This document shows, piece by piece, positions 4,639-23,137 of a stretch of DNA of 32,587 bases. The first letter of the stretch is position 1. Each line of letters opens with the position of its first letter. Location of the stretch: NCBI GenBank assembly GCA_002269645.1, contig NIVC01003358.1, positions 1 to 32,587 on the forward strand, written 5' to 3'. Both the position numbers and the translations under genes were made by a program. This DNA is from Macrostomum lignano. Its lineage: Eukaryota. The notes beneath the pieces were generated by a model that was not told the origin of the DNA, searched no databases, and saw nothing but the letters and a program-made list of their open reading frames with translations.

Positions 4639-5788
4639 TCAGGGTGTATTTTCGTCCTTGACACGGAGCCTCATCTGAGGATCGATGTACACTTCGTGCA
4701 GCTGTCTGGACAGAGTGTTGTGCTCGCAAATCCACTCGCCCGGACTGCGCTCGTAAAGCAGCCTGCGCGATCTCAGATCGGACATGCGATAAAACGACAC
4801 AGCCTGGAAGCAGCTCTCCACCTTTACAGGCGGCAGGTTGTTGGGTGCATCGCGAAGCGACTTTTCATAGCTGACCACGGGGTACTTTGTGTCCTCACCG
4901 AAGCGCTTGTTCAGGTGGAAGCTCAGCGTGCATGGGTCGTAAATGTTGCCTTTGTACGTGGTGTGAGCGCACAGCTGCTGCAGCTGGGGCTTCGCAGCGA
5001 AGTAATAGACACCCTGTGCTATATTGTCCAGATCCCACTCCATCCAACTTATATCCGGGTCGATTATGAGCAGCATCGATGCCTGATCAGCCAGGTGTTT
5101 GTATATGTAGTCCAGGTACTGGTTGCGCAGGGCGGACATTATCAGACCGCGCTCGACTTCTTCAGTGAAGCTGCGCTTCATTTTGAAGCCGGGCTTGTGT
5201 ATGCGACCGCTGCTGTAGCGAATTTTGACTCGGCAGGGCAGCGGGGAGTTGACCCGGCCGCAGCCCAGCAGCGTCACGGTGGGGTCAGTAAGTGTTAAAT
5301 TGTGCAAGTAGTCGCGAGTCAAGTCGGTCGAGTCGTTCTCAAGCAAGACCAGCCAGGAGCTGTTGAACAGGGCTCGCAGGCGCTGGATGTTGTGCAGGGA
5401 GCTCGGCAGACCGGCCATGCCGTTGCGCACGGTGGCTGCCACACGCGCGGCTCCTCTCGGCTCTTGACAGCCGCATGAGGGGAAGCAGCCGGCCGGGCCT
5501 ATCGAACCCGTAAAGCGAGCTGTTCATGCGATCAAGCACGTGCAGGTACAGCTTCTTGAAGGCGGCATCAGTGCTGTTGGCGATGCCGAACGGAGACTGG
5601 GGAAGCAGCTCCTCATTGGACTGGTACTCAGGTTGCGAATCGAAACTGTTTTGACTGAAGTGCTTCTGATGCAGGCAGAAAAATAGAAATATTAAGGTAG
5701 CGCCCACTGTCACGTAAAGACTGGCGACTCGTCGAATTAGAGCAAATTTCTTGCAGCGGATGTAGCAAAACCTAATCTGCTGAGCCAT
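4639..5788 (-). CDS. GT-A fold glycosyltransferase-like protein (CAP59/GT69-like motifs), type II membrane protein, ~382 aa, interrupted by a 1-nt frameshift near 5440-5450
   Basis: ORFs 5339..5788 and 4639..5442 overlap out of frame; the span of 1150 nt equals 383 codons + 1 nt. The N-terminal part has a basic tail, TM segment (VASLYVTVGATLIFLFFCL) and stem. The C-terminal part has AATVRN, LENDSTDxT, MSALRNQYL, a DxD motif (DPD), VESCF and CEH. GC-rich codon usage in AT-rich flanks. Confidence 0.72.
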
Positions 5789-6787: not shown

Positions 6788-7707
6788 CATCTATCCCACG
6801 GCATCTATCCCACGGCATCTATCCCACGGCATCTATCCCACGGCATCTATCCCACAGCATCTATCCCACGGCATCTATCCCACGGCATCTATCCCACGGC
6901 ATCTATCCCACGGCATCTATCCCACGGCATCTATCCCACGGCATCTATCCCACGGCATCTATCCCACGGCATCTATCCCACGGCATCTATCCCACCGCAT
7001 CTATCCCACGGCATCTATCCCACGGCATCTATCCCACGGCATCTATCCCACGGCATCTATCCCACGGCATCTATCCCACGGCATCTATCCCACGGCATCT
7101 ATCCCACGGCATCTATCCCACGGCATCTATCCCACGGCATCTATCCCACGGCATCTATCCCACGGCATCTATCCCACGGCATCTATCCCACGGCATCTAT
7201 CCCACGGCATCTATCCCACGGCATCTATCCCACGGCATCTATCCCACGGCATCTATCCCACGGCATCTATCCCACGGCATCTATCCCACGGCATCTATCC
7301 CACGGCATCTATCCCACGGCATCTATCCCACGGCATCTATCCCACGGCATCTATCCCACGGCATCTATCCCACGGCATCTATCCCACGGCATCTATCCCA
7401 CGGCATCTATCCCACGGCATCTATCCCACGGCATCTATCCCACGGCATCTATCCCACGGCATCTATCCCACGGCATCTATCCCACGGCATCTATCCCACG
7501 GCATCTATCCCACGGCATCTATCCCACGGCATCTATCCCACGGCATCTATCCCACGGCATCTATCCCACGGCATCTATCCCACGGCATCTATCCCACGGC
7601 ATCTATCCCACGGCATCTATCCCACGGCATCTATCCCACGGCATCTATCCCACGGCATCTATCCCACGGCATCTATCCCACGGCATCTATCCCACGGCAT
7701 CTATCCC
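6788..7707. repeat. 14-bp minisatellite (CATCTATCCCACGG), ~65 copies
   Basis: Near-perfect tandem array read directly, with two single-base variants near 6856 and 6996 and degenerate copies at 6707-6787. Confidence 0.97.
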
Positions 7708-9410: not shown

Positions 9411-9923
9411 TTATAGATCTGCATGTACTTATAGATCTGCATGTACTTATAGATCTGCATGTACTTATAGATCTGCATGTACTTATAGATCTGCATGTAC
9501 TTATAGATCTGCATGTACTTATAGATCTGCATGTACGTATAGATCTGCATGTACTTATAGATCTGCATGTACTTATAGATCTGCATGTACTTATAGATCT
9601 GCATGTACTTATAGATCTGCATGTACTTATAGATCTGCATGTACTTATAGATCTGCATGTACTTATAGATCTGCATGTACTTATAGATCTGCATGTACTT
9701 ATAGATCTGCATGTACTTATAGATCTGCATGTACTTATAGATCTGCATGTACTTATAGATCTGCATGTACTTATAGATCTGCATGTACTTATAGATCTGC
9801 ATGTACTTATAGATCTGCATGTACTTATAGATCTGCATGTACTTATAGATCTGCATGTACTTATAGATCTGCATGTACTTATAGATCTGCATGTACTTAT
9901 AGATCTGCATGTACGTATAGATC
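9411..9923. repeat. 18-bp minisatellite (TTATAGATCTGCATGTAC), ~28 copies
   Basis: Near-perfect tandem array. The variant GTACGTAT occurs near 9537 and 9914. Confidence 0.97.
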
Positions 9924-9963
9924 AGGATCACTTATAGTACTTATTGAAAAGGCAAAATCAAAG

Positions 9964-12900
9964 TCAACCGGCAGCAGCCGCTGCGCTGCTGTTGGCCGCC
10001 GAAGATGTCAGGCAGTACGCTAGCGCGGCTGAAGCCGTCTCGGCACCGCGGATCCCGAAGCAGGCAGATCCGGACCCACCGACGCCTCCACCTCCGCCGC
10101 TCCACAGGTCCGCGACTATCGCGGCGAAGCCAGCGGCGACGATGAGGCAGCCAAAGGCGGCGGTGGCCAGCAGCGGGAGGTTTGCCAGCCGGCAGAAGGG
10201 CTCGTCCTGCAGCTGCAGCACACACAGCGGCGGCAGGATGAAAGCGAGCGGAGCCGCTGTGAGGATGCCCTGGGTGAGGGAGGGGTCGGTGAGAATGGTC
10301 TCGGGATGAATACATCCAGCTATTATTCGTGAACTTCAAAAATTCCTCACATTCAGCTGCAGAACAATGTTAAGACAAGGTGTTGCCATGGAGACCAGAA
10401 ATGCACAGCCGACGACGGTGCCGGTGACTGTCACGTGGCGCCAGAGCGGCGAGCCGGGGCGCTGGAACAGAAAGGTCTCCACGACCTCTCTGACTACGAA
10501 GCAGTCAACTGGGAAGGTGAGCACGAGAGATGCAGCGAACAGCAGCCGGGAGAAGTTGATCAGGTCGTCCCAGCTGCAGTAATTTTCCAGCACATCGGGC
10601 TGCACAGCCGAGGTGAAGGTGGCGAAACCGAGGGCGCCGAAGATGCCGAAGATCAGCAGGCAGCTGCCAACGGCGGCGTGCGACACGAGCGACCAGCGCG
10701 ACAGGCTGCGACGCTGCAGCGAGTGAAAGCACAGGTGCGTGCTGTGCTGGCACATGAAAGCTGCAGTTTAATATGAGGGTGTCGTGAAATGCTTGCCACC
10801 TCTTCCTGTGAGCGTTGCAGTATGCAGTGCTCGTGCTACTGATAAGCGAATCAAGAAGTGCTTGAGAAACGATGCGTCTCACCGGCAGCCATAATGCACA
10901 CGGCCTGGGGAACTCTGTCATTGGCGAATGTCCACTCAAACTCCGCAGGCGTTCTGGTGAAGCAGGGTTGCAGAGCCATGAAAGCCTGATGCAAACTCAC
11001 CTTGCGCTTTCACCTCATTCTAAATTTGCCAGTGTAAATACGAGCAAACTGGAAGTAGCTTTCAAAAGATATCCCTAACAAAGAGGAACACGCGAGGTAT
11101 CAATATTCATATCCTCAAGGACTATACTGACGACAGGAATGGTAATCTTCACTGCCCCAGATCAAATACAACCATTGGTTTTGTAATGAAAAATCTTTTT
11201 TCCTATCTCCACAGTGCATTTTTTGCAGGAAATCATGGCCTCCAAAAAATTGCACTATCTTTGAGTTTTACGTCCTGCTATGATGTAGTGGTCCGGCTGT
11301 CTTCGTTTCCCTTGCTTCCTGTTTGTTTTGATTTTATTCACCTGTACATTACATGATTCTCTGTACTAAATGTTTCTGGAGCGGCTAAAAACTATTACTT
11401 GTAGTTTTACCAGAACAGTACGTGTATGTGTATTGAAAATACTTTCCTTATTTTCCTTATATTTCTACTATTAGTAGAGTATCAAAAAATTTTCTTTTGC
11501 AATCTTATAAATTTAGTATGCTGCTACGAGTTATTTTACTGCAAATAAAGTATCAATAAATTAGAGGCATTGTGGTTCTATTGGTATACTTGAATTAATC
11601 GATTTTGCTGTTTCTGTATACGCTATTTCGTGGCGGTCCGGCCAAACAAATCAATTCATAAGTATGCTGGAGCGGGCTACTACAGCTCGTGAAGATCTCA
11701 ACTGCAAATGCAACTTTAACTCAGCAACTTTAACTCAGCACTATGCTTGATACTGTATGCCTGAGAACCGATGCTTGAGCGCGAACAACTTACGCAACAG
11801 GCGAGTAGGCGGACAGTCTGGAGGCCATGGAAACCATGATGAGGCACAGAACCGCAGTTGACAGAAGCGACGTCTGAAATACAATGGAAACGGGCGACCT
11901 GGGATATCCGAAATTCGGGAGGTAAGTAAATAAAACTCTACCAGTGCATTAGTAACCATAATAACCCCAACACTGCGTTCTCATGTTCTGCGAGTCAATT
12001 TGCTGCTAATATGCTAAAAAAATAAATGTTTATCAACTCTTTTATCCAAGGCGCTAGACGTGTGTAGCGTTAATCGCAACTGGCTCGGCAAATGTCCCTG
12101 GGTTGAACCACAGACAAGCATTTAAGGATATGTGCGCATTTTGCTGCTAGAGTCAAACCGTTCCTGCTACACTCCATAACGAACTGCCCAGCCAGCCAAG
12201 ATCCATTCGACATGCGGGAGATTCTCACTGTGCAAGTGGGTGGCGCCGGCATCCGGCTAGGAAATCAGGTGAGCCTCTATAATTAAAACTTATGAAGGCG
12301 TATGGAAAATTCATAGAAAACTTCCTAATTCTTGTATGCCTGAAAACAGTTCTGGGACTACATTCGGACGGAGCACGGGGTGGACCACCTGGGAGTGTAC
12401 CACGGCAACAGCCACCTGCAACTTCAGTACATCGATGTGTACTTCAGCGACATCGAAATGAAGCGACACGTGCCGCGGGCTATCCTGGTGGACTCCGGCA
12501 ACGTGACAGACTCGACCAAGTACAACAGATGGCAGCTGCCAATGCTCATCACCCTGCCGCACGTGAGCGGCTCGGCTGGCACGGGCAACGTTTTCTCGCA
12601 CGGACTGCTGCACCGCAGCAAGGTCGTCGACAACCTGATGGAAAACTTCCGGCGCGTCAGCGAGACTCTCGAATCCCTCCAGGCCGTGCAGGTCATCCAT
12701 GCCATCGGCGGCGGCACTGGCTCGGGCCTCGTCAGCGCATTTCTGCGCGAACTGCGCGACGACAACACCCGGCTGGTAACGACCTGGACGGTGCTGCCCA
12801 GCCCGGTGGTCTCGGACAAGGTGGTCGAGCCCTACAATGCAGTGCTGAGCGTGCCCGCTCTGATCGACAGCGCCGACGTGGTCTGCGCAATCGACAACGA

Positions 12901-15900
12901 GGCGCTCGCGCGCATCGGCTCCGGCAAGCTGCGCACCGCTCACCCGAACTACGACGTCATGAACTCCGTGGCCGCGCTGGCCATGTCCGGCACTACCGCC
13001 TGCGTCCGGTTCCCCGGCCAGCAGAATTCCGACTGGCGCGGCGTCACCGCCAACCTTGTGCCGTTTCCCCGGCTGCACTTCCTGACTCTCAGCCAGGCTC
13101 CGCTGGCCCGCAATTTCGCCGAGCAAAGCCGCAACCTCGGCCCGCAGGGTCTCATGCAGGTGATTGCTTATCCAGTGATAGCTTTTTGATAGGGAAATCC
13201 TAGTTCACCTGGCGCATCTTTCGGTAGCTTTGTCAGTTCTATTAAAGATCGCATATTCACCAAGATTTAGATCCACGATTTGTAAGACAGCTAGGATAGC
13301 AGAATATGCGCGATGCCGGATAGCAGCGACTCCTTCGGCATTCTTATTCATTGTCGGCTTGACCGTACCTCAGGAACTTCGACAGGCGATGAGAAAGTAC
13401 AAAAGATTTCATTCTAAGAGATTCGAGGCGCTTGCTCGGCTTCAGTATTACAATTCAAAGGCTTTCATTTCAAGGCGAGCTAAAAATTCAAGGAGCACTA
13501 ATCCAGTCCAATTGCATTTTCATTTAGCTCGTGACTTAGAAACTACCTCAGAAGCAGCCAAAGCAATTTTTTTCTTGCAGGAATTGGTGAGCAGGGAAAA
13601 TTTCCTCATGCACTGGGACGACAAACAGGCCCGCTACCTGGCCTGCGCTGCCCTGTTCCGCGGCCGGCTCAGCATGGCGCAGGTGGACGCGGCAGTCGCC
13701 AAGGCCAACGGCCGCATCGCCAGCAGCGGCCTGGTGCCGGACGCCGTGATGCGCTCCGTCTGCGACATCCCGCCGCCGGGCTTTACGGCCAGTGGGACGC
13801 TGGTGGCCAACCACACCGCCGTGGCCCGCGCGCTGGCCCGCTCTGTGGACAAATTTCGCAAGATGTTCAAGAAGCGCGCCTTCATGCACTGGTACGAGGG
13901 CCTCACCGAGGCGGACTTTGCCGAGGCCGAGAAGCGAACGGTTGACTTGGTTGCAGAGTACATCCAGCTGGAGCGGCAGCCAAAGCAGGCCGGTGGAGTC
14001 GACGAGCAGTGGTGATCTGGGCGTGGCCCAGTCGGCTGCTGATGCACTTTCGGTTCGAACTACTCAGAGAAAAAAATTCCAAACAACTTGATTTTCGTTT
14101 AAGTTATAAATTTCAGTTGTGCATGGTATAAGTTGTTTCTGAAAATTGAGTTTCTCTGGGTCAAAAAATTGCACTGCCGACTGTCGGGAAATAAACTTGA
14201 CCTTTCAACCTTTTTGTTCGTTGGCTCGCGTAAAAGTTAAAAAATGAAAAAATGCTTTCGTAGCTACTTTCATTAAATTTTAATTTAAAGCTACCTTGCA
14301 AAGTGCATCTCATCGCATACCTTGGACAGCTTAGAGATGTTGCGGTACAAGCTGAGCGGCAGGCAGACGAACAGCGAAGCGAGGAAGACGGCAAAGTTTC
14401 GGTTAGCCAAAACTGAATGGCGCGCCTCCGCTGTGGGATTTGGAATTGGAATTCGAGCTCGTGGATCCATTCTGAGCTGAGATTCATCGACGCTCAGCAA
14501 CGAATTTACGGCACCCAATGATTAAAAATTTACTCACGTCCTCGAATCCGAATGACAATCTCGGCTATTGAGTCCCCAATTATGACATTGTAGCTGACCA
14601 GAGCTGGAGTCCAGTTAAAGGGAAAATTGTGCACGCATTGGCGAGGTAAACAGGCTAGTACTCGCACGGGTCTAAAAGTGGTCCTTGGCCTAGTACTCGC
14701 ACGGGTCTAAAAGTGGTCCTTGGCCTAGTACTCGCACGGGTCTAAAAGTGGTCCTTGGCCTAGTACTCGCACGGGTCTAAAAGTGGTCCTTGGCCTAGTA
14801 CTCGCACGGGTCTAAAAGTGGTCCTTGGCCTAGTACTCGCACGGGTCTAAAAGTGGTTCTTGGCCTAGTACTCGCACGGGTCTAAAAGTGGTCCTTGGCC
14901 TAGTACTCGCACGGGTCTAAAAGTGGTCCTTGGCCTAGTACTCGCACGGGTCTAAAAGTGGTCCTTGGCCTAGTACTCGCACGGGTCTAAAAGTGGTCCT
15001 TGGCCTAGTACTCGCACGGGTCTAAAAGTGGTCCTTGGCCTAGTACTCGCACGGGTCTAAAAGTGGTCCTTGGCCTAGTACTCGCACGGGTCTAAAAGTG
15101 GTCCTTGGCCTAGTACTCGCACGGGTCTAAAAGTGGTCCTTGGCCTAGTACTCGCACGGGTCTAAAAGTGGTCCTTGGCCTAGTACTCGCACGGGTCTAA
15201 AAGTGGTCCTTGGCCTAGTACTCGCACGGGTCTAAAAGTGGTCCTTGGCCTAGTACTCGCACGGGTCTAAAAGTGGTCCTTGGCCTAGTACTCGCACGGG
15301 TCTAAAAGTGGTCCTTGGCTAGTAAGGGACTAACAGTGGTCCTTGGCTAGTAAGGGACTAACAGTGGTCCTTGGCTAGTAAGGGACTAATAGTGGTCCTT
15401 GGCCTAGTATTCGCACGGGACTAACAGTGGTCCTTAGCCTAGTATTCGCACGGGACTAACAGTGGTCCTTGGCCTAGTACTCGCACGGGACTAACAGTGG
15501 TCCTTGGCTAGTAAGGGACTAACAGTGGTCCTTGGCCTAGTACTCGCACGGGACTAACAGTGGTCCTTGGCTAGTAAGGGACTAACAGTGGTCCTTGGCT
15601 AGTAAGGGACTAACAGTGGTCCTTGGCCTAGTACTCTCATGGGACTAACAGTGGTGCTTTGACACAGGACAAGAAACTAGCGGACTCACAGATGAAGGGA
15701 TAGACGGCCTGCATGGCGGTGGCAGTCAGGTAGCCCGCTTTGCCGAGGGAAACTCTGGCCATGTTCTGAAAAGCGGATAAAATATGCCTGGCGTTGCCGA
15801 TGCCACAGACAAGGACAACTCGCAAAGGAATGCAAAAAATTGTGTTAAGCATTCTCTCCTTTATTTTCATGCACCAACTGAACTTCAGCTCTGTTTTTTT

Positions 15901-18543
15901 CACCGGTCTCCAATGGTATTTATTATGTCGTCCTTGCCCACAGTACTGCACACAGACATAAGATCTTTGCCTCCTCCTTTACTGTTCTTCATTAAACGGT
16001 CCGGCATAAAACAAGTTAATTTTGAGTCAATAGAACAGAACAAGTGGCTAATACCTGATAAGAGACGGTATTTGAGAGGGCGCCTCCGGTGACGATGAGG
16101 TGGATGGAGTAGTCGGTGGCCAGCGCCACAGCAGCCAGCAGCAGGAGGCCCAGGCCGATGCCGGAGCAGTGCAGGGCGAAGGGAATGCCTGGTGGCGGTT
16201 CGGGGCTCATTGAGAAGGCGTGTTGTGTCTGTTCAGGTGACCCCCGATCTAGTCTGGACACCTGATCTGGTCTCCCAGGAAATACCGGATCTAGTCTCGC
16301 GATGGACACCTGATCTGGTCTCACAGGTAATACCGGATCTAGTCTCGCGATGGACACCTGATCTGGTCTCACAGGTAATACCGGATCTAGTCTCGCGATG
16401 GACACCTGATCTGGTCTCACAGGTAATACCGGATCTAGTCTCGCGATGGACACCTGATCTGGTCTCACAGGTAATACCGGATCTAGTCTCGCGATGGACA
16501 CCTGATCTGGTCTCCCAGGAAATACCGGATCTAGTCTCGCGATGGACACCTGATCTGGTCTCACAGGTAATACCGGATCTAGTCTCGCGATGGACACCTG
16601 ATCTGGTCTCCCAGGAAATACTGGATCTAGTCTCGCGATGGACACCTGATCTGGTCTCACAGGTAATACCCGATCTAGGTCGTAGTTGCAAGGCATCTAG
16701 TCTCACGGCATCTAGTCTCACAGAGGACACCCGTTTTAGTCTTGTAGGCAACACCCGGTGTAGTCTAAAGTCGTACTGTACATTTATAGTCTTTATGCTT
16801 TATTAATGCTACATGGGTACTTACTGCTCTGGAAAATTAAAGTATAATTATTTTTTTGCTTCCATGCTTGCAGCTCTTGCTACATACGAGTACAAACTAA
16901 CGGGTATTAAACATATGGCTCGTATTTCACACATTCAGATGGAAAAGCCAGTACACACGCATTTCTGGGCATATCGTTTCCAATAATATGGAAGCTTTAA
17001 TTAGAATTTCTCAAATCCATACTTGTCACTCGCCACAAGCCAGGGACAAGGGCAGCCAGAATAAAGTGCAGCGGAGACAACAGGCAGGCTGCAGGAGACT
17101 TAAACTACAGCTACAGGCCTTGTGAGAGTATCCGACTTTGGGAGTTCTACCGCAAATCCCAGCTACGCAGACCCTCACGCATCGGCTCACGTCGGAGCCC
17201 GCAGGGGTGCCGGAGCAGCCGCGCCTCCCAGCAGTTTCTGCTTGCTGCCCGCACGCCCACCGCCAGTGGAGGCCACGCGATGCGGACAGCCGCCCCGGCC
17301 GCCAACTTTTCCCCAGCTCTCTGCCGCATCGCGTGCAGGCTATGGGAGGCAGCCAGTGACTGGCATTAAGAGAAGGCGGGGCAGGCAATAGGCAAGACAC
17401 TACTGAGCTGGGGCTGTAGCAGCTTATTGCTTTTCCTGGTGCAGGAGGTGCAGTACGCACTGTGCCACGATGCAGGTGTCCATCATTCACATTAATTGGA
17501 TTCGCCCCAGCTCTAACAGCGGAGTTGCAGTTCCACGCAAGGCATTAAGCAGCTTTAGACAGGAATTATTCTGAGTTCAAGGTAAATTACTGACCAACTA
17601 TGCCCGAGCCGATGACGGAGTTGACCACATTCACAGTGGTCATGAGCAGGCTGGATCGGTGGTCCTCATTGTCGTCATCGCAGCTGGCTGGGAAGACTGC
17701 AGAGTTCCAGGTTGCTGTCTCGTCTGCCACGGGGCTCTCAGCACTACCGGCGGTAGCCAGCGAGTCTTCTGCAGAGGAGACTGAGTGAGAGCTCTGCAAG
17801 AGGCGGGAGGAAAGTTTATCAAAGCTGATCGATCTCGGAGTTTCAGTCTGATCTACCACAGGGCCCGTAACACAGGTCGATCAGCAATTTTTTTCATGCT
17901 GGTCCTCACAGTTTAAAAGCAAAACTAAGTTTAGAAATCTATAAATAGTGCTTAGCAGTGCACAAATGTGAGAAATGGTGCGGTGCCGCAGCGGCAAGTG
18001 CTGTCCAAGCGGTTCCCGCATCCGGCAGCGGACTTCATGCATAATTCAGGCATCGCTGCTCAGCCCGGACTATTGAGTGGCGGGGCAGCAGCTCAAGCTT
18101 TGCCAGGCCCGGGCCAAGTTTGGCACTGAAGAATTCTAATCTGAGAAGAAGCCGTCTCAACAACTGAGCTGAGCGAAATACCTGCTGATGATGACGCTGA
18201 AAATTCTGCGCCAGGCCAAGCCGCCGATCTGCCGGATTCTCCAGCAGCGCTTCGACCGCGTCGAATTCGTTCTTCGGCTCTGCCGCTGATTCAGCCGGGG
18301 TGGTCGGGGATGGGCGATGGAAAAGGCTGGCTATAGTGTGCATAAAATGCATTGCAGTCAGCCTACATGTCATAAACCTAGCACCAAACACAGGCTATCT
18401 TAGAAAGCTCTCTGGAAGAATTTCCTTAAATAATGAATGTTGTCTCAGCATTGTTTTAAACGAAATTTGAGCCTTCAATAAACTTCTCATCAATTTTATG
18501 TGCTTTATCAAACGCCCTATACTTAGGTGCAATACTTACCCAT
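9964..18543 (-). CDS. SLC38A11: SLC38A11-like amino acid transporter (AAAP/Aa_trans family), 11 coding exons, ~519 aa
   Basis: Hand-spliced exons, all GT-AG and phase-compatible: 18543-18540, 18285-18182, 17793-17595, 16188-16055, 15765-15690, 14603-14538, 14430-14321, 11873-11794, 10953-10883, 10760-10351, 10269-9964 (1560 nt). Motifs: NSVIGSGIVGIPFA, VYPFISLVSYNVIIGDS, LPLSLYRNISKLSK, AFMCQH, DVLENYCSWDDLINFSR, LTFPVDCFVVREV, AAPLAFILPPLC. The two 5' exons are less certain; exons 3-11 are strong. Confidence 0.9.
12212..14015 (+). CDS. TUBB-like: Highly divergent beta-tubulin-like protein, 3 exons, ~433 aa, nested antisense in the transporter intron 11874-14320
   Basis: Exons 12212-12268 (MREILTVQVGGAGIRLGNQ), 12350-13159 and 13581-14015, all GT-AG and phase 0. 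Motifs: MREI, VPRAILVD, GGGTGSG, VVEPYN, IDNEAL, RFPGQ, NLVPFPRLHF, CDIPP, AFMHWY. RFPGQ, PFPRLHF and the intron after codon 19 are beta-type features. Confidence 0.92.
14190..14195 (+). terminator. Candidate polyadenylation signal of the tubulin-like gene
   Basis: AATAAA ~175 nt after the stop codon, still inside the host intron. Confidence 0.4.
14655..15655. repeat. 35-bp minisatellite (CTAGTACTCGCACGGGTCTAAAAGTGGTCCTTGGC), 19 near-perfect copies followed by a mixed 28/35-bp variant zone; intronic
   Basis: Period of 35 read directly for 14655-15320. Variant units with GACTAACAG and TAGTAAGGG occupy 15320-15655. Confidence 0.96.
16243..16678. repeat. 48-bp minisatellite (dimer of two related 24-mers), ~9 copies; intronic
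   Basis: Unit CCGGATCTAGTCTCGCGATGGACA + CCTGATCTGGTCTCACAGGTAATA, with CCAGGAAATA variants. Confidence 0.95.
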
Positions 18544-18662: not shown

Positions 18663-19480
18663 CTCAATTTCAAGCCTGCTTCCAGTGGGAAAGGCCTCTA
18701 CACCCTTTCCATTGTGTAGCTAACGTGGTTGTGGGTGTCTCATTTGAAACAACACAGGAAGTGTGGCGACTTGCAAGCCCGGCAGATCTGTCAGCTCACC
18801 TGATAGCATCCCAGATAAGCTGAGGCTTGAGCACCGACCGATTACTGCAGGATTTTTTCAGGAATAATTGTAGATCAAAGCCTCATTAAACCGCACAAAG
18901 ACAGATCTCAATACTCAGCTCTCAGCATTGATCCTCGTGCGATCAATGAGCCCGCACATACATGTATGGACTCACAGCTTCAGGCTGGGCCAAACAACTA
19001 AGCTTTGATCCCTTGCTGGCTCCGGGCTGAATTGTGAGATTGTGACTAGCAAGCTACTTAGCTACCTACACCCGCATCAACTCTGCTTTCCTCAAGAGAG
19101 GTGGCAACAAAGAGGGAAAGTGCTCACAAAAATCAACAGCTGGCAATAACAGTAGTACGCTCGTATAGCCAAGATACATGTGGCAATGCAGTAGTAATCA
19201 ATTCAAACAGCCATAACCAAGAGCAGGTATACATGTGAAAAGTTCCTGGTGTTGAGATGCTTTCAACATCTTTCATCTTTCTTTCAACAGCTTTCAAAAT
19301 TCCTGGTGTTGAGATGCTTCTCTGATGCTTTCAACGTTCGCGAGTTTTGAAAAGAGTTTTTGTGTTTTTGCATGCATTGCAAAGTCGGAAGGTCCATCCC
19401 AATACGCACAGTCCCTGACTTTGCCTTGTTAGACAGTCGGTAGTATTCTGGATATTTTCAATTGGGCTGGAAGCAATGTA

Positions 19481-20796
19481 TGCACTCTCTGCATGCACAG
19501 CACACTAGACGCACTCTCGGCATGCACAGCACACTGAATGCACTCTCTGCATGCACAGCACACTAGACGCACTCTCGGCATGCACAGCACACTGGATGCA
19601 CTCTCGGCATGCACAGCACACTGCATGGATGCACTCTCTGCATGCATAGCACACTAGACGCACTCTCGGCATGCACAGCACACTGCATGGATGCACTCTC
19701 GGCATGCACAGCACACTGGATGCACTCTCGGCATGCACAGCACACTGCATGGATGCACTCTCTGCATGCATAGCACACTAGACGCACTCTCGGCATGCAC
19801 AGCACACTGGATGCACTCTCGGCATGCACAGCACACTGCATGGATGCACTCTCGGCATGCACAGCACACTGGATGCACTCTCGGCATGCACAGCACACTG
19901 CATGGATGCACTCTCGGCATGCACAGCACACTGGATGCACTCTCGGCATGCACAGCACACTGGATGCACTCTCGGCATGCACTCTCGGCATGCACAGCAC
20001 ACTGGATGCACTCTCGGCATGCACTCTCGGCATGCACAGCACACTGGATGCACTCTCGGCATGCACTCTCGGCATGCACAGCACACTGGATGCACTCTCG
20101 GCATGCACTCTCGGCATGCACAGCACACTGGATGCACTCTCGGCATGCACAGCACACTGCATGGATGCACTCTCGGCATGCACAGCACACTGGATGCACT
20201 CTCGGCATGCACAGCACACTGCATGGATGCACTCTCGGCATGCACAGCACACTGGATGCACTCTCGGCATGCACAGCACACTGCATGGATGCACTCTCGG
20301 CATGCACAGCACACTGGATGCACTCTCGGCATGCACTCTCGGCATGCACTCTCGGCATGCACAGCACACTGGATGCACTCTCGGCATGCACTCTCGGCAT
20401 GCACAGCACACTGGATGCACTCTCGGCATGCACTCTCGGCATGCACAGCACACTGGATGCACTCTCGGCATGCACAGCACACTGGATGCACTCTCGGCAT
20501 GCACTCTCGGCATGCACAGCACACTGGATGCACTCTCGGCATGCACTCTCGGCATGCACAGCACACTGGATGCACTCTCGGCATGCACTCTCGGCATGCA
20601 CAGCACACTGGATGCACTCTCGGCATGCACTCTCGGCATGCACAGCACACTGGATGCACTCTCGGCATGCACAGCACACTGGATGCACTCTCGGCATGCA
20701 CAGCACACTGGATGCACTCTCGGCATGCACAGCACACTGGATGCACTCTCGGCATGCACAGCACACTGGATGCACTCTCAGCATGCACAGCACACT
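19481..20796. repeat. Compound minisatellite built on GCACTCTCGGCATGCACAGCACACTGGAT (29 bp), with 33-bp and 42-bp variants
   Basis: Read directly. Variants arise by a GCAT insertion and by duplication of the 13-bp GCACTCTCGGCAT. Confidence 0.96.
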
Positions 20797-22000
20797 GTAG
20801 CTGTGATAGCAGTTCAGGTATTCATAGTTCATACGAGTCTCGTATACGCAAACCAATATAGAGCCGCAGAGCTTCAGTTTGCACTCCCAGTCACTGCCAG
20901 TCAGCTGCAGTCCACATGAAGATCTCATTAGTAATTTCTGCCTTTTTTCTTTCGCAGACCGCGCCCATGCAGTCAAGTTGTATCGATTCCACTGCTGCCG
21001 CTGAGCTGGGAACTTGAAACTGACGCATGCCGGGTCGCAGCTTTCCCGCTCAAACTCACCTGCACGACGATTGCCGGCATGCCTCCATGGGATTATTGTG
21101 CACTCGTACTATTGTCGTGCTTGTTATTAACTGTCAGTCTTGGACGATCGAGTGATGATTTTGCGTTTTGGGCGTCAATGCTGTTTATGTCGTTAGCTTG
21201 AATGGATCGTTCTGCGACCCGTGAGATTAATACACTCCTACTTCAAGTAGTAAAGCTCAGGCAAACTAAAACGAAATGAGTAAAAATAGAAACTATGCAC
21301 TCGTAGGTGCGAGCGTAAGCACTTTTAGAGCTAGATTAGCAATCTGTGCCGCTCCCCGTTGTTGAGGCTACAATTTTTTGAATAAACTACATGTATAGGT
21401 TTTGGCTTTGTAAGTCAACTGATGATCTCATAAGGAAAATGACGTTTTAAAGCAGAATAGCATCCGCCCTGAAAGCCAGCTATGCAGCCTAAGATATCAG
21501 CATCCCCTATGATGTTCGGCTCAAAGCATCTGAGCAATTCCTATGAGCCACAGAATTTCAGCGATTCCCCATATGAGCCTTGACATCTCAGAATTTTCTC
21601 ACATAAACCTTGACAACTCAGCGATTCCCCCTCAGCCACACAATTTCAGCGATCTCACCATGAGCTTTGAAATTTCTCCTGCGAGTTTTGACATCCCAGC
21701 GCAAATGCTATGTATGTCATTAGCTTAGAACTACTGTACCCCTCTACTTGTATTTAACTTAATCAATCGCAGAGTATCAGCTACACAGAAGAAACTATAG
21801 GCATATGCTGTATTATATAGAAATGATATCGATATCTCTGATTTAGATACGGTGTGTGCTGTTAAAGCACTCAATGGTGGCTTTTTACACTGTACACGTA
21901 GATTATTCGTAGTTAATATTAATAATATTAAATGCTAGAGCACATATACAGTCGCGCCAATACTGTATGCAGCTCATACACACACTCAGACAAGGTGTAA

Positions 22001-22714: not shown

Positions 22715-23137
22715 CACTCATTTACCCAAGTTTCAGGTAAGACAGAAGCTTTCTCTATGCCCAACACAGCCACTCATTTACCCAAGCTTCAGACAGAAGC
22801 TTTCTCTATGACCCAACACAGCCACTCATTTACCCAAGCTTCAGACAGAAGCTTTCTCTATGACCCAACACAGCCACTCATTTACCCAAGCTTCAGACAG
22901 AAGCTTTCTCTATGACCCAACACAGCCACTCATTTACCCAAGCTTCAGACAGAAGCTTTCTCTATGACCCAACACAGCCACTCATTTACCCAAGCTTCAG
23001 ACAGAAGCTTTCTCTATGACCCAACACAGCCACTCATTTACCCAAGCTTCAGGTCAGACAGAAGCTTTCTCTATGACCCAACACAGCCACTCATTTACCC
23101 AAGCTTCAGGTCAGACAGAAGCTTTCTCTATGACCCA
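22715..23137. repeat. 52-bp minisatellite, ~8 copies; the last copies are 57 bp (CAGGT insertion)
   Basis: Unit CAGACAGAAGCTTTCTCTATGACCCAACACAGCCACTCATTTACCCAAGCTT; period verified at 22790 and 22842. Confidence 0.93.

Follow-up and report, generated by a model that had tools for sequence, protein, structure and literature searches.

A diverged beta-tubulin gene nested in an intron of an SLC38A11-like transporter gene in Macrostomum lignano

The window analyzed here is the entire 32,587-bp contig NIVC01003358.1 of the Macrostomum lignano assembly Mlig_3_7 (GCA_002269645.1), and it contains a complete, intron-containing beta-tubulin gene on the plus strand that lies within a single intron of a larger gene on the minus strand, which by homology would encode an SLC38A11-like (SNAT11-like) amino-acid transporter. 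We read the two as an ordinary opposite-strand nested gene pair, a diverged beta-tubulin inside an intron of a transporter gene, with a probability of roughly 0.8. The gene structures, their homology, the conservation of the introns, and the conservation between genomic copies are established. The nested gene itself is already known, having been deposited in GenBank as Mlig010323.g2 and filed under "hypothetical protein" or "Tubulin beta chain." The reconstruction of the host gene, which is absent from the public annotation, is new, as are the recognition that the tubulin is a beta-tubulin derivative of extreme divergence, apparently restricted to its lineage and held under purifying selection, and the evidence, from comparison with other genes, that host intron 5 and tubulin intron 1 are both ancestral.

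Structure of the nested gene pair

The nested gene begins with an ATG at position 12212 and ends with a TGA at 14015 of the plus strand, a span of 1804 bp. The spliced coding sequence (CDS) is 1302 nt long, with 433 codons in three exons, and both introns have GT..AG borders (Table 1). Its product is identical at every residue to GenBank PAA51787.1 (BOX15_Mlig010323g2, Mlig010323.g2; UniProt A0A267DSZ2), and the CDS of Mlig010323.g2 in the Mlig_3_7 gene set is exactly the model built from the DNA. The protein contains the Pfam domains Tubulin (PF00091, 1.5e-35, residues 3-208) and Tubulin_C (PF03953, 1.2e-17, residues 259-376). The best 60 matches in a sequence search of the PDB were all beta chains at ~1e-100, with nearly collinear alignments, and the best matches in protein collections bear beta-tubulin names. 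An AlphaFold model, built from an alignment of 39 beta-tubulin relatives, had a mean per-residue confidence (pLDDT) of 82.9 and a predicted template modeling score (pTM) of 0.88 and was weak at residues 70-76, at residues 87-95, and in the last eight residues. A fold search with this model returned as its top 50 matches B and D chains (and one H chain) of tubulin complexes, with a template modeling (TM) score of 0.90, which we read as beta chains. Because the model leans on a beta-tubulin alignment, it indicates fold compatibility and is not independent proof. By its domains, predicted fold, and best matches taken together, the nested product is a beta-tubulin.

The host gene was recovered by homology. 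Searches using tblastn with SLC38A11 proteins found a run of short minus-strand exons from ~17680 down to ~10100, and the gene was rebuilt from these as nine GT-AG coding exons that form one open frame of 483 codons (483 residues) across ~9964-17793 of the minus strand. The nine exons joined together contain the Pfam domain Aa_trans (PF01490, 1.8e-53, residues 45-433). The best matches of the product are SLC38A11 orthologues, every named one of which is a "sodium-coupled neutral amino acid transporter 11," and the product is 48% identical over 404 residues, with 2 gap positions, to SLC38A11 of the nemertean Tubulanus polymorphus (P0123). As judged from these alignments, the homology is far beyond chance and identifies the host as an SLC38A11-like gene. 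Its best match within M. lignano is a 55%-identical paralogue (P0121). Host introns 1 to 4 and 6 to 8 measure 1406, 289, 1086, 107, 840, 122, and 81 bp, respectively, and intron 5, the one that holds the tubulin, is the largest.

The intron that encloses the tubulin has a donor, gtatgc, right after 14321 and an acceptor, tatttcag, just before 11873 (minus strand). The flanking host exons read ...NISKLSK/TSLLST..., with the slash marking the exon border, and align without gaps to SLC38A11 orthologues across the junction. These borders and the seamless protein alignment across them mark the intron between 14321 and 11873 as real by homology. An earlier note on this DNA had described a whole intron-containing tubulin gene in one intron of an amino-acid transporter on the opposite strand; the reconstructed gene structures match that description, and its figures (an intron at 11874-14320, 2447 bp in length, a tubulin gene of 1804 bp, and flanks of ~340 and ~300 bp) all hold, the flanks measuring 338 and 305 bp. 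The longer flank is the presumed tubulin promoter region, and the 305 bp lie between the tubulin stop codon and host exon 5. Within these 305 bp is a lone plus-strand AATAAA, at 14190, which predicts that the nested mRNA would end inside host intron 5. No minus-strand AATAAA was found inside this intron, where only about one is expected by chance.

The spliced leader of M. lignano, a 35-nt sequence with ATG at its 3' end, is spliced onto about 30% of the genes of this species (PMC8629364). Within 20 nt upstream of the tubulin ATG, AG dinucleotides occur at 20, 16, and 11 nt. A spliced leader added at any of these would place its own ATG out of frame, which argues weakly for a conventional capped tubulin transcript.

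Two minus-strand open reading frames (ORFs), at 12311-13126 (271 residues) and 13634-14047 (137 residues), lie antisense to the tubulin exons. SLC38A11 homologues gave only two chance-level matches to them (E values of 6 to 9), and our reading is that they result from the tubulin's G+C-rich codon usage and do not represent host exons.

The window also contains six large tandem arrays, at 6788-7707, 9411-9923, 14655-15659, 16255-16678, 19480-20797, and 22740-23137, with units of 14, 18, 35, 48, 29, and 52 bp, respectively, in up to 66 copies; they give rise to long spurious ORFs on both strands. The 35-bp array fills much of host intron 3 and the 48-bp array much of host intron 1, and the 18-bp array starts 41 bp past the host stop codon.

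Table 1. Coordinates of the nested tubulin gene and its host gene in the window
Feature	Position	Strand	Description
Host intron 5	11874..14320	-	2447 bp, phase 0; contains the whole tubulin CDS (12212-14015)
Presumed tubulin promoter and 5' untranslated region	11874..12211	+	338 bp, from the host exon 6 border to the ATG
Tubulin exon 1	12212..12268	+	57 nt, codons 1-19: MREILTVQVGGAGIRLGNQ
Tubulin intron 1	12269..12349	+	81 bp, gtgagc...aaacag, phase 0, directly after codon 19
Tubulin exon 2	12350..13159	+	Codons 20-289; GTPase domain (GGGTGSG) and first part of the C-terminal domain
Tubulin intron 2	13160..13580	+	421 bp, gtgatt...ttgcag, phase 0
Tubulin exon 3	13581..14015	+	Codons 290-433 and TGA; ends ...QPKQAGGVDEQW, without acidic tail
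AATAAA	14190..14195	+	Only plus-strand one between the tubulin stop and the host exon; 126 bp short of the host exon
Candidate host 5' exon (uncertain)	18182..18373	-	ATG...CAG/GTATTT, 64 codons, in frame with exon 1
Host exon 1	17595..17793	-	Acceptor ttgcag/AGC to donor GTCAGT; no genomic ATG at 5' end
Host exon 2	16055..16188	-	Homology and splice borders
Host exon 3	15690..15765	-	Homology and splice borders
Host exon 4	14538..14603	-	Homology and splice borders
Host exon 5	14321..14430	-	Ends ...LPLSLYRNISKLSK; 5' flank of the tubulin-holding intron
Host exon 6	11794..11873	-	TSLLSTAVLCLIMVSMASRLSAYSPVA; 3' flank of the tubulin-holding intron
Host exon 7	10883..10953	-	Homology and splice borders
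Host exon 8	10351..10760	-	Homology and splice borders
Host exon 9	9964..10269	-	Ends in TGA

Genomic copies and constraint

The M. lignano assembly contains many duplicated blocks at at least 95% identity (PMC5730564). Two further copies of this region were found, on NIVC01001098.1 (L001, g3) and NIVC01000581.1 (L002, g1), each of which follows the window collinearly for about 19 kb and has the same layout. The three copies are 94-98% identical around the tubulin gene, and the surrounding noncoding DNA differs by 2-10%. Compared with the window, the tubulin codons carry 7 synonymous changes and 1 nonsynonymous change in L001 and 6 and 1 in L002, giving a ratio of nonsynonymous to synonymous differences per site (pN/pS) of about 0.05; the sole nonsynonymous change, G427S, is found in both copies. 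The tubulin CDS (1302 columns) contains 8 substitutions in L001 and 7 in L002, and the tubulin introns (511 columns) contain 10 substitutions and 8 indel columns in L001 and 26 and 11 in L002, so that the introns diverge several-fold faster. Everything in this comparison of the copies points to a functional tubulin gene under purifying selection.

In the host, all nine exons are of equal length and free of stop codons in both other copies, and all 16 splice sites are kept. The host codons show 6 synonymous and 3 nonsynonymous changes in L001 and 14 and 11 in L002, with 8 of the 11 L002 replacements falling in the N- and C-terminal tails. By these counts both genes look constrained. The earlier note had called both genes intact. 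This stands for the tubulin and, as regards the nine in-frame GT-AG exons present in three copies, for the host; the part that does not stand is the host start, since the first homologous host exon has no genomic ATG.

The acceptor of that exon is strong (ttcctcccgcctcttgcag/AGC at 17793, minus strand). An ORF immediately upstream (17880-17794) was considered as coding sequence and rejected, as it has a 1-bp indel in L001 and stop codons in L002, and everything from the acceptor on is intact in both. Since neither of the other copies keeps the upstream frame open, the coding sequence begins at the acceptor or downstream of it. Farther upstream, in none of the three copies does the conserved candidate 5' exon contain an indel before its donor, indels set in directly after the donor, and the host possibly extends to 18373. 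The ATG of the spliced leader would also be in frame at the exon 1 acceptor. The host start codon may thus come from the upstream candidate exon or, in trans, from the spliced leader.

A ~306-bp insertion is present only in NIVC01000581.1 (L002 9546-9852), ~130 bp upstream of the tubulin ATG (window ~12075-12082). It is nearly a perfect palindrome, has long terminal inverted repeats, and is bounded by an 8-bp duplication (ATCGCAAC). In appearance it resembles a miniature inverted-repeat transposable element, one that is present in one genomic copy and absent from the others. In L002 the ~130 bp next to the ATG remain about 96% identical, which suggests, but does not show, that the tubulin core promoter is proximal.

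Elsewhere in the window, positions 4639-5788 (minus strand) contain a copy of a 398-residue single-exon gene annotated on NIVC01001098.1 (L001 2672-3868), which has only a weak, subthreshold match to a CAP59 mannosyltransferase-like Pfam family (E = 0.005). In the window copy, which is unannotated on NIVC01003358.1, a deletion of 47 bp near 5443 causes a frameshift; this copy is either a broken duplicate or an assembly error.

Divergence and origin of the nested tubulin

The nested tubulin is 39-42% (about 41%) identical to canonical beta-tubulins, whether these come from animals, from fungi, or from protists. Among 149 near-invariant columns, defined as those at least 97% conserved in 32 canonical beta-tubulins, it deviates from the consensus at 46; when the canonical sequences were left out one by one, each departed at no more than 11. 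The protein keeps the N-terminal MREI, the T4 motif GGGTGSG (AIGGGTGSGL), the T5 motif SPVVSDKVVEPYN, DNEAL (T6), RFPGQQN (T7), PFPRLHF, and the helix-12 pattern. The T1 loop reads GGAGIR instead of GQCGNQ, with substitutions of C12, N14, and Q15, each of which is at least 97% conserved in the 32 canonical sequences. The T2 glutamate is missing, there are two-residue deletions in SYFVEWIP and in WYTGEGMDE, and glycine occupies the position of the lysine of the beta-tubulin motif LRKLAVN. The acidic C-terminal tail of tubulin is the site of tubulin modifications. This tail is absent from the nested product, which terminates ...EYIQLERQPKQAGGVDEQW, with two acidic residues past helix 12.

No relative above ~45% identity was found in a word-indexed search of 5.8 billion proteins, and none other than P0002 and P0009 was found in an exhaustive HMMER search of 1.84 billion cluster representatives; the HMMER search likewise found no second tubulin of the same type in the protein collections. 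P0002 (79%) and P0009 (59%) were considered as paralogues and rejected, because their alignments alternate between identical and frame-shifted stretches; they are mis-modeled versions of the same tubulin gene from an older assembly. P0009 (UniProt A0A1I8JPW5) carries a 178-residue N-terminal extension, parts of which match plus-strand ORFs at 9944-10776 of the window (QYASAAEAVSAPRIP, NRKVSTTSLTTKQSTGK). These ORFs are the antisense of host exons 8 and 9, and an ab initio predictor apparently took the antisense of the unannotated host for extra tubulin exons. By sequence comparison, the nested gene is a highly diverged beta-tubulin paralogue that has no close relative outside M. lignano in the collections searched, and it is apparently restricted to its lineage.

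The first intron of the tubulin bears on its origin. Three beta-tubulin genes, from the octocoral Dendronephthya, the bat Rousettus (TUBB1), and the tapeworm Echinococcus, were mapped directly onto genomic DNA, and each has a phase-0 intron after codon 19 at the identical place. The first exon of each is 57 nt long, as in the nested gene, where exon 2 likewise starts at F20; in the three comparators exon 1 ends in gta and exon 2 opens with TTCTGG or TTTTGG. None of the three shares the second intron of the nested gene, which falls between the positions equivalent to residues 291 and 292 of beta-tubulin. A literature search on the codon-19 intron found only papers on benzimidazole resistance (codons 198 and 200). 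The retention of the codon-19 intron marks the gene as a DNA-level duplicate of an intron-containing metazoan beta-tubulin gene, and the earlier proposal that this ancestral intron speaks for an origin at the DNA level and not from a retrocopy is borne out by the same intron in the cnidarian, bat, and tapeworm genes. The host intron was found to contain no repeats, whether inverted, direct, or terminal, and no target-site duplications around the tubulin, and it therefore offers no positive sign, at the level of sequence, of transposon-mediated capture or transposon cargo.

The enclosing intron is also shared beyond M. lignano. SLC38A11 of T. polymorphus has an 825-bp intron at the identical position and phase (KLSK/ASLV), which is too short for such a tubulin gene; because position and phase are shared, the tubulin sits in an old, preexisting intron. 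All eight host introns appear to be matched in Tubulanus by exon mapping, with intron 5 checked to the base, and the Tubulanus gene has three introns beyond these eight. The nesting is common to all three M. lignano copies and absent from Tubulanus, and because all three copies share the layout, it predates the duplications that produced them.

Expression, alternative explanations, and known systems

Stranded RNA-seq and a de novo transcriptome, not ab initio prediction, underlie the Mlig_3_7 gene set; where StringTie transcripts from opposite strands shared coordinates, they were compared and the strand supported by at least five-fold fewer reads was dropped (PMC5730564). The exact agreement of the annotated CDS with the model built from DNA is indirect evidence that spliced plus-strand tubulin transcripts exist. 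The public annotation on the three contigs keeps the tubulin and lacks the host, likely because the weaker of two overlapping strands was discarded. If the strand filter did remove the host, the host transcript would be far scarcer than that of the tubulin in whole-worm RNA. Weak host expression in whole worms fits the annotation, but interference between the genes is not demonstrated by it. The gene identifier Mlig010323 was not found in the full-text M. lignano literature or in its supplements, the latter having been covered in part.

The favored nested-pair reading envisages two separate RNA polymerase II units. A promoter belonging to the tubulin itself, located in the 338 bp before the ATG and probably in the proximal ~130 bp, would drive its transcription; the transcript would lose its own two introns and end at the AATAAA at 14190, all within host intron 5. 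The host pre-mRNA would cross the antisense of the whole tubulin gene and discard it by joining 14321 to 11873. Host splicing in vivo, the use of the promoter and poly(A) site, and the relative expression of the two genes are what we infer from the gene structures and the annotation. As for its history, a metazoan beta-tubulin gene would have been duplicated at the DNA level with its ancestral phase-0 intron kept, the copy would have come to lie in the already existing transporter intron before the recent M. lignano genome duplication, and it would then have diverged strongly and now be under purifying selection. Polymerase collision or antisense effects between the pair are possible by analogy.

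Several observations weigh against this reading. No called gene on NIVC01003358.1, NIVC01001098.1, or NIVC01000581.1 corresponds to the host, the host protein is in none of the databases searched (the 5.8-billion-sequence collection), and no genomic ATG opens the first homologous host exon (acceptor 17793). Moreover, the tubulin transcription start site and poly(A) site are predictions, the counts of synonymous and nonsynonymous changes are small, and the dating rests on three copies of one genome. The points that concern the host would all be expected if its exons were a silent or decaying duplicate, with the tubulin merely lying between relic exons, and in that case the 55%-identical paralogue P0121 could carry the host function; the absence from a gene set based on RNA-seq fits as well. 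A relic is nevertheless distinctly unlikely, since nine exons have stayed open and equal in length and 16 splice sites have been kept in three copies despite the 2-10% difference in noncoding DNA, with the nonsynonymous changes concentrated in the N- and C-terminal tails. The pseudo-ORF upstream of exon 1 is broken in the other copies and the exon proper is not, the removal of the weaker overlapping strand by the annotation pipeline would alone delete the host, and a spliced leader ending in ATG would supply a start in frame at the exon 1 acceptor. It is also unlikely that the layout itself is functional, with antisense transcription making tubulin and transporter expression mutually exclusive (for example, germline versus soma, as the earlier note had proposed) and selection keeping the arrangement. 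Retention of the nested arrangement in all three genomic copies would agree with this, as would the strongly unequal expression suggested by an annotation that keeps the tubulin strand only, and interference between nested and host genes has been documented elsewhere (PMC3192792). However, the three copies are recent duplicates, so their shared layout is inheritance and not evidence of selection, and the nemertean orthologue works without a nested gene. A literature search found expression records for neither gene, and genes nested in introns are common, lying mostly on the opposite strand, with intronic genes making up ~6% of Drosophila genes (PMC3786989).

A bolder proposal would make the tubulin a neofunctional isotype, possibly confined to Macrostomum, that with its remodeled T1 loop and no modifiable tail builds or regulates a specialized microtubule structure in one cell type (for example, the germline) and is set against the host by antisense read-through, the nesting serving as a regulatory device; we give this conjecture little credence. 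The same divergence, that is, 41% identity to canonical beta-tubulins, 46 changed columns of 149 that include the T1 loop, the missing acidic tail, and the failure to find an orthologue elsewhere, could instead come from lost constraint in a drifting, nonfunctional duplicate, but this is very improbable for a 433-codon frame that is intact with canonical splice sites in three copies, has a pN/pS of about 0.05 while its introns gather several-fold more changes, is present in a transcript-derived annotation, and encodes a confidently predicted fold that keeps the T4, T5, T6, and T7 motifs. Arrival as a processed retrocopy or as the cargo of a transposable element would account for a tubulin alone in its intron and far in sequence from any parent gene, yet it is barely credible. 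The processed retrocopy was rejected because the gene has two spliceosomal introns, one of them at the ancestral beta-tubulin position, and no flanking direct repeats, and transposon capture was rejected because no inverted or direct repeats surround the nested gene; no poly(A) tract, terminal inverted repeats, or target-site duplication flanks it.

For general genome biology, the opposite-strand nested pair adds little, because such genes are well known and frequent in animals; between 5 and 14% of vertebrate genes overlap another gene (PMC2151771). For those who work with M. lignano, it is of practical note that the public Mlig_3_7 gene set omits, on three contigs, an intact, conserved SLC38A11-like gene, and other hosts of nested genes may be absent from it through the same strand filter. 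Mlig010323 is a very unusual beta-tubulin under purifying selection and, in a tractable flatworm, a reasonable candidate for in situ hybridization or RNA interference.

Among known nested genes, Drosophila 2mit, in intron 11 of timeless2 (PMC3786989), is likewise a complete gene in one intron of a larger, unrelated gene on the opposite strand. The M. lignano pair differs from 2mit/timeless2 in organism and gene families, in that the nested gene has its own introns, and in that the host is missing from the public annotation. The host shares with Tubulanus SLC38A11/SNAT11 an Aa_trans domain across the protein and the sequence identity given above. In contrast to the Tubulanus gene, it has three introns fewer, contains tandem arrays (introns 1 and 3) and an entire gene (intron 5), and lacks a genomic ATG at its first homologous exon; M. 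lignano also has the second, 55%-identical paralogue. With canonical beta-tubulin (bovine TUBB2B, PDB 4i4t chain B, and Echinococcus beta-2 tubulin, P0051), the nested tubulin shares full-length domains, the fold (TM 0.90), the motifs MREI, GGGTGSG, SPxVSDxVVEPYN (T5), DNEAL, RFPGQ.N, and PFPRLHF, and the codon-19 phase-0 intron, whereas it is only ~40-41% identical, has GGAGIR at T1, has lost the T2 glutamate and the acidic tail, and has its intron 2 elsewhere than in the comparators. Drosophila CG32396 (betaTub65B) is a testis-enriched, lineage-specific, divergent beta-tubulin isotype. The nested tubulin is likewise a fast-evolving extra beta-tubulin paralogue beside conserved isotypes; the resemblance is a lead only.

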